Source of the DNA: Podarcis vaucheri
Taxonomy: Eukaryota
Length of the DNA stretch: 64,000 nt
Reading direction: 5' to 3' (one strand)
Assembly: GCA_965113315.1 (NCBI GenBank)
Contig: OZ220368.1
The position numbers and the translations under genes were made by a program. The notes under the pieces are model-generated. The model saw nothing but the letters and a program-made list of their open reading frames with translations, ran no database searches and was not told the DNA's origin. This document shows, in pieces, positions 9,801 to 17,800 of this stretch (positions are counted from its first letter, which is position 1; every line of letters begins with the position of its first letter).

Positions 9801-10602
9801 AGGTCTGAGCAAACTTGGCCTCTGAGAAACAAATACAGTGGTACCTCGGGTTAAGAATTTAATTCGTTCTGGAGGTCCGTTCTGAACCTCAAACTGTTCT
9901 TAACCTGAAGCACCACTTTAGCTAATGGGTCCTCCCGCTGCCGCTGCACCGCCGCCACACGATTTCTGTTCTCATCCTGAAGCAAAGTTCTTAACCCGAG
10001 GTGCTATTTCTGGGTTAGGGGAGTCTGTAACCTGAAGCGTCTGTAACCCAAGATACCACTGTACAGTATTCTAGTGCTTGCAGCAATGGTAGTGCTGAGT
10101 AACCATCTAATCAGTGCAAGGATAATAATCTGTCTGAGGACACTCTGTGAACTTCTCAGCTGGACTGGGATGTAAACCTAAGTCCATCTCCAAGCCTAAT
10201 GCTCTCCTGCCAAAGCACCATTCTATACCTCCTGTTCTCCAAACACGAAGTAGCCATGTTTAATATTGGATCTCATGGAATCGGTGCAGTAATTCAGTCC
10301 CGAGTCCTTGGTGGCAATCACCTGAAATCAAGTTTGAGAAAAATGTAACACATGGTCCAACTTCCTTTTTAAGCTTTCTTGGTGTTTCTTCCTAACCAGG
10401 GTGCCAGCTGAACACCACTATGACACTGGGGCTATTGACAGAGCCACACATGTTCCGTACCTGACCAGTTTTCTGATGGTAACCAGTTAGCCGGACAGCC
10501 CCATCTCCTGGTGGGGCGCCTTTTACTCTATCAAGGATGAACCCTAATTGTCTTCTTTCATTCTGCTGGGATTGTGGCCACTCGAGCACTGCTTCAATTT
10601 TC
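830..10602 (-). CDS. Uncharacterised multi-exon gene encoding three tandem C2-like domains (at least 16 exons, about 753 codons; both ends unresolved)
   Basis: Minus-strand exons, all GT-AG with consistent phases and no stops: 10602-10461, 10321-10229, 9438-9231, 9123-9017, 8554-8414, 7560-7406, 7099-6979, 6161-6045, 5629-5532, 5438-5226, 4830-4656, 4178-3996, 3195-2944, 2261-2193, 1303-1223, 934-830. Peptides include GDGFDLYIDGARFLPDGVTVTRV, IGWAALNVF, VSLNDGAHQLRIF, RYVPCATLLVRLIKAP, GLFQARPDYSDGVYYS, FCFNPPG, WPVWLDGFK and GYCNTGIYQLPLYQGAPS. The C2-like call is inferred from motif pattern only. Confidence 0.88.
4224..4254. repeat. (AC)n microsatellite
   Basis: Direct dinucleotide run in an intron. 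Confidence 0.95.
6279..6860 (-). mobile_element. CR1-type LINE 3' end in reverse orientation, with an internal 26-bp duplication and a probable nested L2-like tail
   Basis: AAGAATATAA...GGGCCCACCTAGTCCAGCATGCTGTTCTC resembles the reverse complement of reptile CR1 3' ends. TGGCCAACTAGATGCCTATAGGAAGC occurs twice (about 6339-6396). An L2-like tail lies at about 6410-6620. Boundaries are approximate. Confidence 0.6.
7625..8245 (+). mobile_element. CR1 LINE ORF2 C-terminal fragment (degenerate)
   Basis: Translation MQFFVNKCREMH...QERDLGAIVDSSIKMLIQC...KAKSMLGI...IMPLYKYMV and HLEFCVPFWSPHLKKDI match the CR1 RT C-terminus. Stops are present. Confidence 0.9.
9836..10061. mobile_element. Tc1/mariner-type MITE
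   Basis: TIRs CAGTGGTACCTCGGGTTA ... TAACCCAAGATACCACTG with TA on both sides. Same family as 57928-58168. Confidence 0.88.
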
Positions 10603-14834: not shown

Positions 14835-17800
14835 TCACCTTTTATTGGGTTTGTATTGGAGAGGCTGTTCCTGATCAGGAGGAGAGTCAACAAAGCCAGT
14901 GTAAGGAGGGACAGAGAAGAACAGGCTGGTGGGGGCAGGGTGGAAAGAGTGCTGGGCTGCAGGAAAGTCTGTAGGGGGTGCTGTGCAACTGGACACCTGC
15001 ATTTGAAATAACAAAATACAACAGGATTAAACAGGTGAGGCGGGGTAGCATGGCAAGCAAGGCGAGGGCAGTGTAAATATACTGGGGGTGAAAGGAAGGC
15101 TTCCAATCTCCTGATCCTACTTTTCAAATGTTCCTTCCAGTGGAGAGTTTGCCATCCACTTGCCGTCATTTCTACAAACCACCTTGCTTCCGCTCAGTAT
15201 TAGCATTGGAATGATGGAAATTTAAAACTTGCTTTCGCCTCTCAGTAATACAGTACTAATTTTATCTGGAAAACTTTAAGCTTTTGTTTCATGATTTCCA
15301 ACAATTTGGGTCCTTTTTTTTTTTTTTTTACATGGAACCAGTTGTGCTGTATGATGTACTTTCTGGGCCCAGGATTGTGCAAGTCAGTGCAGGAGCACTG
15401 GATTGGTAGCGGCAGGTATAGATGAGTATGCTTGTTCCTGCTGCCACCAACCCAGTGCTTCTCCTATCCTCTCTGCCATGCTGCCTCACTGTGTTTGAGA
15501 GACTGGTGCAGTGGCAGCACCCCATCTCACTGAGACACTACTTGAGAACCTTGGACTTTTCAGTTGAGTGACAGATAGAATTATTTTTAATGCTAGGAAT
15601 TAAAGTAGCTACTTAATTGTTGAATTAGTTATTAATTTTATATGAATGTGCTAAATAGTTAATAGCTGGGATTTTAAAAGGCTTCAGTCAGATGGTAGCA
15701 TACTTCATTTATTCCTTTGAAATATCTAATTAATACATTTTCACTGAGTTTGCTCTTAGCCTTATCTTCCATGGATACTGGATAGCCTTAACCTCCAGTT
15801 CAGCTATCAGTGGCTACTACTAGTTATGATGGCTATAACCTCCAGGGTCAGAGGTAGTATCCCACCAAGTACCAGTTTTGGGGGAACAGGAGTGGGAGGC
15901 TATTATTGTGCTCATGTTCTCCTTGTGGTTTCCCAATTTTTCACCATTTATCTATTATTTCAAATTGTCTTTTTAGTGTCATTCCGGTTCTCTGCAGCAA
16001 ATAAATATTGAGGACACAAAGAACCTGTTTTTCAGAATCTGCCCTCAAGCAATGCTAACTCGAAAAAGAGTTAAAAATATCTTCGAAAGAGACAATAATG
16101 CCATGCAGTTCAACTCACTGTAGGAGGGTATTTGTACAAGGAGGCATTGCCTGGATGAATCTCTGCCATCGACTGCATGTCAGCATCTCTTGCATTCACT
16201 AGTCGCAAGTACAGCTCTGCTTTACCCAACTGTGAGGAGAAAACAAGGTGTGGTCTGGTTGGGATTAAAACAGATGCGAAAATAACTGAAGACGATGTTG
16301 GACTAATTTATCTTGATCTGGCCAAGGTGTTCTGAGGAACAGCCATCATTCCAGGAATGTTTCTATTCAGTCAATGAGGCCTGAGATTGAACCTGTCTCA
16401 AATCACACCCAGCACAATGCAGAAAGTAGGTGCTCAGTGTTAAGGGCCAATGTTAATGGTTCACCATGAGTCTCCTGAGAGCCCGAGCATGACACTCTCC
16501 CTTCATGTTGGTCAGGAAATAATTTTCTGGGCACTCAGCACTGACCCTTGCTAAAGGTCCTCACCTGGGGCACACCATTCAACTGTTCTGGAGTGAGGCT
16601 TGGCTTCATAGGAAGCACTCGGATGGGGATCTTCCAGCGCCCACACATCACTTGATGTAGATGGTCAAAGATGTTGATTTTGGCCCACCCCCTGGGGGCC
16701 AAATTTTGAATCTCCAGCCCATAAGCATCAAAGCCTCCAGATGCTTGAAGCTCGGTTATGAGGGTGATGGTGGTTGAAGGAAGGACTCTGAAAAGCAAGC
16801 ACAGACAAAGGTAATACATACAAGCCTACCTTTTTCTCTACAAATCTGAATACAGAGTTCACTGTAGCCATGTTTCACATGGGGCTTTGGCAAAGAAGAC
16901 TATCTTCTATATGACACTAACGTATCTGACATCTAAATAAGAACAGACAAGAATCTGGCGCGTGCAAAACTGGACTGAAACAGCCTATTTTATGGCAATC
17001 TGAAGCTCATACTAATCCCCAGAGTGAGTGGTTCCCATGCCAAGATGATAGGGCCCTGAGTCTTCTAATGGGTCAGGATAAAAGCAGTTCATGATAGATG
17101 GTCTTCTTTGCATTGTTGTTTAGAAAGGAATCTCCTACCACTTATCATTGCATTTGTCTTGAGCATTATTTTGCTGTACACTATATACATTGAAACAATG
17201 AAAACAAATAACTTTGCCAACTGGGAACAGAAGAGATGAGATGTCATGTCGTGGCAAAAGCCACTGAAACTCACCTTGGGACTGGTTGCCTAGCTGCTAA
17301 GATGGCGCAGCACCCTCTTTGCCCATCAGTCACATACTGTGGGTATTGACCCATATCAGAGGAGACAACGGGCAGTGGGGTGGGCTTGCCCAACTCTTGC
17401 CCATTACGGAACAGGCCAGAGACCAGGCAGACTTGATAGAATGTGGGATCCAGGCCCAAAAGAAAATCATAGAATATCACAAAGCCAGACCTGCAGAGAG
17501 ATGATAATTTGTCACACTCATGTAATAGTTAACACAGCTTGCATGCCACCCCAATCTGAGTGGAACTCCAGGGGTTCTAGGCACTTCCAGGAATTAGGAG
17601 GGTTTAGGCATACAGCCTATCTCCCACCACCCCAAACACTTAACAACAGCTATTTTCTATAAGCTGGCTGCAGTCCAGAAGACTCAACAGGCTAGATTCC
17701 AAAATGTATCCCTAGAAATGGCAATAGGATGGAAAAAATGAACATCTTCACTTTACATGGCAGTGTCTACAAATACTCTATGCAAGAATGAGACAGGAAA

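Follow-up and report, generated by a model that had tools for sequence, protein, structure and literature searches.

The stretch analysed here, the window, is 64,000 nucleotides (nt) of DNA from Podarcis vaucheri (GenBank assembly GCA_965113315.1, contig OZ220368.1) and holds no runs of N. All gene features lie on its minus strand. Two apparent units follow one another: CCDC17, whose last recognisable exon ends at 14839, and a downstream unit coding for C2-type domains, whose first secure exon begins at 10602. A preliminary description of the window had suggested that they may be one gene encoding about 1450 amino acids (aa). We placed 31 coding exons from 24697 to 492, which give a CCDC17 of about 1,455 residues and are collinear with the 1454-1455-aa CCDC17 proteins of lacertid lizards crossing the same junction; homology therefore supports the suggestion. 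We put the probability that both units belong to a single full-length CCDC17 gene at roughly 0.85.

Exon boundaries were located by a search for GT-AG junctions against three orthologues (P0161, P0027 and P0032, the last being P. lilfordi CCDC17), and the best junction in this region joins 14839 to 10602. The features around it are as follows.

14996-14839, minus strand: coding exon 14, 158 nt, phase 0 at its start and phase 2 at its end
14846-14841, minus strand: AATAAA, formed by Asn-Lys codons
14838-14837 and 14837-14835, minus strand: donor GT and the TGA overlapping it, read from the sequence
14838-10603, minus strand: intron 14 of the long form, 4,236 nt
10602-10461, minus strand: coding exon 15, 142 nt, entered in phase 2; linker and start of the second C2-type domain (LGFILDRVKGAPPGDGAVRLTGYHQKTGQ)
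10321-10229, minus strand: coding exon 16; older split annotations start here, at the downstream half's first in-frame Met (MRSNIKHGYF)

The exon 14 donor and the entry into exon 15

Exon 14 is entered at the acceptor ...TTCAAATGCAG/G (the slash marks the splice site), and its product of 52 residues plus two bases of an Arg codon is 94% identical to P. lilfordi CCDC17. The donor reads ATAAAAG/GTGAGA, and the two spare bases in front of it give phase 2. The TGA occupies positions +2 to +4 of this donor and is a stop only if the donor is left unused; exon 14 is an internal exon, not the last exon of CCDC17.

A stop at this place is unremarkable, because the GTRAGT consensus yields one at +2 to +4 of a phase-2 donor. 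Seven of the gene's eight phase-2 donors (21201, 20887, 17275, 14839, 7406, 5532 and 5226) give TAA or TGA on read-through, the sole one that does not being 17865. This check used the boundaries placed against the orthologues, and those at 5532 and 5226 were also inspected by eye. The general lesson is that a stop codon overlapping a phase-2 donor is how an internal exon is expected to appear to a reader of open reading frames (ORFs), and is no signal by itself.

The AATAAA at 14846-14841 was considered as a working poly(A) signal and rejected, as RNA contigs pass through it and it merely consists of Asn-Lys codons. Other species have NER, KQR or SQR at this position, and the hexamer is not kept. 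Candidate poly(A) hexamers inside intron 14 lie at 14307, 14103, 12351 and 11385. In sharks, bowfin, salmon, frogs, turtles, alligator and squamates the short CCDC17 models without exception finish in ...R-stop at the homologous donor; evidently, its read-through occurs often enough to have entered annotations throughout the jawed vertebrates.

Exon 15 follows the acceptor TTATTTCAG/G and is 98% identical to its P. lilfordi counterpart. Joined to 14839 it continues the frame as ...QYKPNK-R-KIEAVLEW..., the peptide across the junction being ...QYKPNKRKIEAVLEWPQ.... A frame check of the window sequence found no in-frame ATG in exon 15, nor does the exon ending at 11083 (described below) supply one upstream of the conserved downstream coding sequence. 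The ATG at 11250 in that exon was rejected as a start, since it lies in another frame which terminates at the TAG 11085-11083. Coding conservation reaches upstream of the first Met, where the motif LGFILDRVKGAP...RLTGYH, that is LGF(I/V)xDRVKxAPxGDGxLRLTGYH, is kept as far as oyster. Stand-alone models of the downstream half across vertebrates start at scattered internal Mets, often within the conserved first domain.

What the preliminary description reported of this junction can be seen in the sequence: the exon end AAT AAA AG/GTGAGA with the TGA in a phase-2 donor and an AATAAA before it, the acceptor at 10602 entered in phase 2 without a start codon, and the in-frame reading KPNK-R-KIEAVLEW. 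It is also right that no CpG island lies between the two units (CpG observed/expected at most 0.25 outside an inserted retroelement), yet this is uninformative. The missing island was rejected as evidence for a single promoter, since the 5' end of CCDC17 has none either (observed/expected 0.21 at 24.5-25 kb).

Orthologues, transcripts and competing readings

Current models of CCDC17 in lacertids are long: 1455 aa in Podarcis muralis (XP_077784914.1), 1455 aa in Zootoca vivipara (XP_060132934.1) and 1454 aa in P. lilfordi (CAI5777312.1). They are predicted models with the same exon order and junction residues as the window gene, and all three cross the proposed junction with KPNK-R-K(I/F)(K/E)AVLEWPQSQQNERRQLGFILDRVKG..., in which AVLEW comes directly after K(I/F)(K/E). 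The window exons share 94-98% identity with these proteins, none of which they match completely; in the part upstream of the exon-16 Met, one or two residues at the start of the linker are the only differences from the three lacertids. Present-day public annotations of related lizards thus already join the two units, and the merge is known in the databases. The cluster of P0032, to which these three proteins belong, also contains older split models of 581 aa and 689 aa (LOC114599101) in P. muralis, 693 and 699 aa in P. raffonei, 694 and 689 aa in Lacerta agilis, and 694 and 715 aa in Zootoca. The upstream halves of these end in KPNKR-stop, and the downstream halves open at the first internal methionines, either MRSNIKHGYF (exon 16) or MILIARFYHW (exon 17).

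The exons were searched singly, and database orthologues stood in for the joined window model in searching and folding. An exhaustive search with the exon region 9163-9462 of the window gave 12 representatives, several of them long with the match far from the N-terminus, as in the 1454-aa CCDC17 of Bufo bufo (match at residues 769-827). The source databases name the matched proteins coiled-coil domain-containing protein 17. Annotated CCDC17 models reach a length of about 1230-1500 aa in many lizards, turtles, frogs, a salamander, Polypterus, eels, gar and amphioxus; snakes have many shortened models of 864-918 aa. Oyster, too, has the downstream half, and in a flatworm and a chytrid it occurs with the domain CCDC17_C. 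Independent support for a fusion at the RNA level comes from an invertebrate: P0152, one ORF of 983 aa contained in one 5,879-nt Logan contig, matches with 36% identity over a length that begins in CCDC17_C, takes in the junction region and reaches the end of the downstream half. With one exon as query, a word search matched only an 84-aa Logan fragment, and sequence searches of the PDB with both halves gave no match.

No mammal or bird was among the matches in homology searches with downstream-half queries, and this absence indirectly suggests that both lost that half. Human CCDC17 has about 620 aa. Work on mammals appears to have dealt with no more than the front half of an ancient protein with four C2 domains. 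Short CCDC17 proteins of about 650-700 aa, annotated in many vertebrates, share the zinc finger, coiled coils and CCDC17_C with the window gene, whereas they are without the three downstream C2-type domains; the non-mammalian models among them end R-stop at the donor seen in the window.

RNA data came from two RNA-sized Logan contig sets (runs X1 and X2) of an organism about 2.3% diverged from the window, here called the relative. Two features inside intron 14 are needed for reading them.

13674-12520, minus strand: fragment of a long interspersed nuclear element (LINE), 5'-truncated, with RVT_1 at E=1.1e-18 and an ATT-repeat tail
11380-11083, minus strand: 3' end of an alternative exon, with donor TAG/GTAAAT at 11083 spliced to 10602; the contig is continuous up to 14993

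One contig in each of the two runs (4,652 and 4,918 nt) bridges the two units. These contigs carry the spliced upstream exons to 16232-16119 and a splice to 14996, so that the junction of exons 13 and 14 is present in RNA, and then run unspliced through donor 14839 and the TGA to 13675. They continue from 12519 to 11083, are spliced by a GT-AG junction to 10602, and end with exon 15 and 91 nt more, consistent with exon 16. The introns on either side (16118-14997 and 11082-10603) have almost no coverage in X1 and X2; 14838-11083 is therefore specifically retained and does not reflect general pre-mRNA. The junction of 11083 and 10602 occurs in contigs of three runs (X1, X2, and X5 of another study) and in one raw read of X23, which indicates RNA from the minus strand. 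Transcription is continuous across both units, and donor 11083 is real. Of 260 coding-exon bases, one separates the relative from the window (TTA to TTG at 10545, synonymous), compared with a divergence of about 2.3% in the retained stretch.

The exon ending at 11083 has the look of a conserved exon without coding function, either a 5' exon or an alternative one. In its frame a TAA stands at 11273-11271, and the next 62 codons include no Met. A homologue begins isoform X3 of Candoia aspera LOC134494866 (P0005), where it is spliced to the same acceptor; relative to the ORF of this boa, the reading frames of the exon in the window are broken. A longer in-frame path through intron 14, proposed from the letters alone, was rejected on the RNA evidence: its exons at 13839-13752 and 11626-11582 are unspliced in the contigs, that at 10904-10815 has zero depth, and only donor 11083 is real. 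The observations that the preliminary description named as contrary to one gene were not made: not all CCDC17 transcripts end before 11.8 kb, no ATG exon of a separate downstream gene was found, and bridging contigs exist.

The LINE is a lineage-specific or polymorphic insertion, because only 18 nt separate 13675 from 12519 in the relative's contigs. RNA contains other copies of this LINE family in great abundance, at depths of up to about 78,000.

An in-frame join has by itself a chance of 1/3 and is weak evidence alone. Several points weigh against one gene. The orthologous long proteins are computational models. The direct junction of 14839 and 10602 is absent from the contigs and reads examined, the raw reads being from one run only with almost no depth, and it must be rare in these samples because the contigs run unbroken past 14839. 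Nor does a contig across two units prove one molecule: a CCDC17 3' untranslated region (UTR) overlapping transcripts from an internal promoter would assemble alike, and the ends of RNA molecules are not visible in contigs. Several annotations of recent date keep the locus in two parts (P. raffonei, Lacerta agilis, Elgaria, Rhineura and Amia). The alternative would be two separate genes, that is, a short CCDC17 with a long 3' UTR and a downstream gene transcribed from a promoter in 11.1-14.8 kb, with the bridging contigs arising from overlap or low-level read-through. Such an arrangement would agree with the passage of contigs through donor 14839, the splicing of a distinct upstream exon to 10602 in four runs, the start of the boa model P0005 in the homologue of that exon, the split models already named (and that of Pristis), and two Logan transcript ORFs (P0044 and P0050) which end ...R-stop at the donor. 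We nevertheless regard it as improbable. The lack of an in-frame ATG upstream of the conserved coding sequence and the phase-matched junction used in many annotated long proteins were counted against a separate downstream gene; the split models begin at differing internal Mets and cut into the first domain, and P0152 has the fused ORF on one contig.

Marginally less probable still is a gene fission under way in squamates, by which the long splice would be rare or lost and the downstream half, if made, would be N-terminally shortened and start at the exon-16 Met, from transcripts starting in or running through intron 14. The dominant contigs are without the 14839-10602 junction, the 11083 exon and its junction are common to a boa, and shortened models are frequent in snakes, all of which suits this possibility. 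It fits poorly with the stretch upstream of the exon-16 Met: that stretch is unchanged from the three lacertids save for the residues at the start of the linker, and against the RNA relative it has one synonymous change in 143 nt compared with about 2.3% in flanking non-coding sequence, though these are small numbers.

With a single CCDC17 gene, splicing of 14839 to 10602 over the 4.2-kb intron would give the long four-C2 protein. If donor 14839 were left unused, one more residue (Arg) and a stop would follow, giving a short protein of about 690 aa, which would correspond to the CCDC17 of older annotations and probably to the form retained by mammals. The form prevailing in the relative's RNA contigs reads through 14839 and uses donor 11083 to reach 10602, supplying no start codon for the downstream part. 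We infer use of the 14839-10602 splice in this species, and a single promoter from which the short and long products arise as alternatives. The dominance of read-through in the sampled RNA, together with a second donor feeding the same acceptor, would explain why annotation pipelines keep splitting the locus.

A composite terminal exon, where the choice between splicing and intronic polyadenylation after read-through makes long and short proteins, is known from the switch between secreted and membrane immunoglobulin mu, the textbook case. There, likewise, an internal exon whose donor is unused leads to a stop and an alternative 3' end; in contrast, the contigs at exon 14 continue into exon 15. 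Tentatively, and with rather less than even confidence, the exon-14 donor may have served since early jawed vertebrates as a point of decision between a short one-C2 and a long four-C2 protein. Mammals, and perhaps birds, would have fixed the short form and lost three C2-type domains of a protein of the ciliary tip, and squamates would have added a non-coding exon whose donor, 11083, leads to the same acceptor. This reading was described in none of the papers searched, and no paper was found on long CCDC17 or on its loss in mammals.

Predicted domains and their significance

From its N-terminus, the full-length protein would comprise a C2H2-like zinc finger, coiled coils, a proline-rich stretch, a C2 domain of the PI3K/AIDA type, a variable linker and three C2-type beta-sandwiches. 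The zinc finger scored below the Pfam cut-off in the N-terminal exons (zf-C2H2, E=7e-4, 20.3 bits against a cut-off of 25.2); its CxxC...HxxxxC motif is kept in the alignment. Single-exon Pfam scans, 20 in all, yielded only this weak zinc finger. Scans of whole orthologues found no family for the downstream half, the best being PI3K_C2 at E=0.017, below the cut-off. Exons 1-14 align to CCDC17 proteins with precomputed PF28454 (CCDC17_middle_coil) and PF28455 (CCDC17_C) of Pfam 38.1. The family assignment is therefore by homology to annotated members, the local copy of Pfam being without these two families.

Structure models were made of orthologues with AlphaFold2. The downstream half of Elgaria (P0138, alignment A1; mean predicted local distance difference test score 71.8) is modelled as three beta-sandwich domains at residues 33-188, 234-383 and 499-685. 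Its Foldseek matches in the PDB are multi-C2 proteins (ferlins, DOCK, E-Syt, PI3K C2) and chains of the ciliary central pair. In the short CCDC17 of P. raffonei (P0164, alignment A2) a confident domain is predicted at about 455-640. This is the CCDC17_C domain, which Foldseek relates with probability 1.0 to PI3K C2 and AIDA C2 at template modelling scores of 0.67-0.70 by target; the structural look-alikes in the Atlas are NPHP4_C2, Aida_C2 and PI3K_C2.

Among the downstream domains, hhalign gave probabilities of 88.7% for the first against the second and 47.8% for the second against the third. Kinship of CCDC17_C with the three at the level of sequence was rejected (probability below 6%), so that what would link them is their modelled fold. 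The claim of four C2 domains made in the preliminary description is accordingly supported at fold level by the two orthologue models, with one predicted domain in the CCDC17 half and three downstream. C2 domains of the PI3K and AIDA types and those of ciliary proteins (NPHP4, RPGRIP1) appear to share this fold, an eight-stranded beta-sandwich; the likeness is one of fold, whereas no local Pfam model scored above its cut-off.

For annotation, the two models would become a single merged CCDC17 gene encoding about 1,455 aa, of which the TGA at 14835-14837 is not the stop. For cilia biology the result is a modest lead. CCDC17 is listed among the ciliary-tip proteins of multiciliated cells (PMC12700831) and appears as a ciliated-cell marker in other papers, and the ancient four-C2 protein would also be present in amphioxus, molluscs, a flatworm and a chytrid.

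Exon map and other features of the window

The coding exons other than 14 to 16 were placed as listed here.

24697-16119, minus strand: coding exons 1-13; C2H2-like zinc finger, coiled coils, Pro-rich stretch and most of CCDC17_C
24697-24509, 24131-23994, 23086-23024 and 22265-22148, minus strand: coding exons 1-4, by GT-AG search
21360-21201, 21045-20887, 20444-20311 and 19612-19478, minus strand: coding exons 5-8, by GT-AG search
18544-18318, 17950-17865, 17490-17275, 16787-16565 and 16229-16119, minus strand: coding exons 9-13, by GT-AG search
9438-492, minus strand: coding exons 17-31 and stop; rest of the three downstream C2-type domains and C-terminal tail
9438-9231, 9123-9017, 8554-8414, 7560-7406 and 7099-6979, minus strand: coding exons 17-21, orthologue-guided
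6161-6045, 5629-5532, 5438-5226, 4830-4656 and 4178-3996, minus strand: coding exons 22-26, orthologue-guided
3195-2944, 2261-2193, about 1310-1223, 934-830 and 521-495, minus strand: coding exons 27-31, with the stop at 494-492

The start ATG of CCDC17 is at 24697 or 24694. There are no frame breaks across the 31 exons, and their order is collinear with P. lilfordi CCDC17 as well as with proteins of Hemicordylus, gecko, cobra, alligator and toad. Searched one by one with tblastn against the P. lilfordi protein (P0032), the exons were mostly 84-100% identical, values below 84% arising from high-scoring segment pairs that extend beyond the exon ends.

The intron before exon 26 contains a (GT)n microsatellite of about 40 nt at 4215-4262 on the minus strand. 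Upstream of CCDC17, in 25000-64000, no other gene was identified, the analysis having been directed at the CCDC17 locus. There, minus-strand frames at 36050-36610 of the window contain two nearly identical sets of ORF pieces, suggestive of a repeat or of a tandem duplication at this site.

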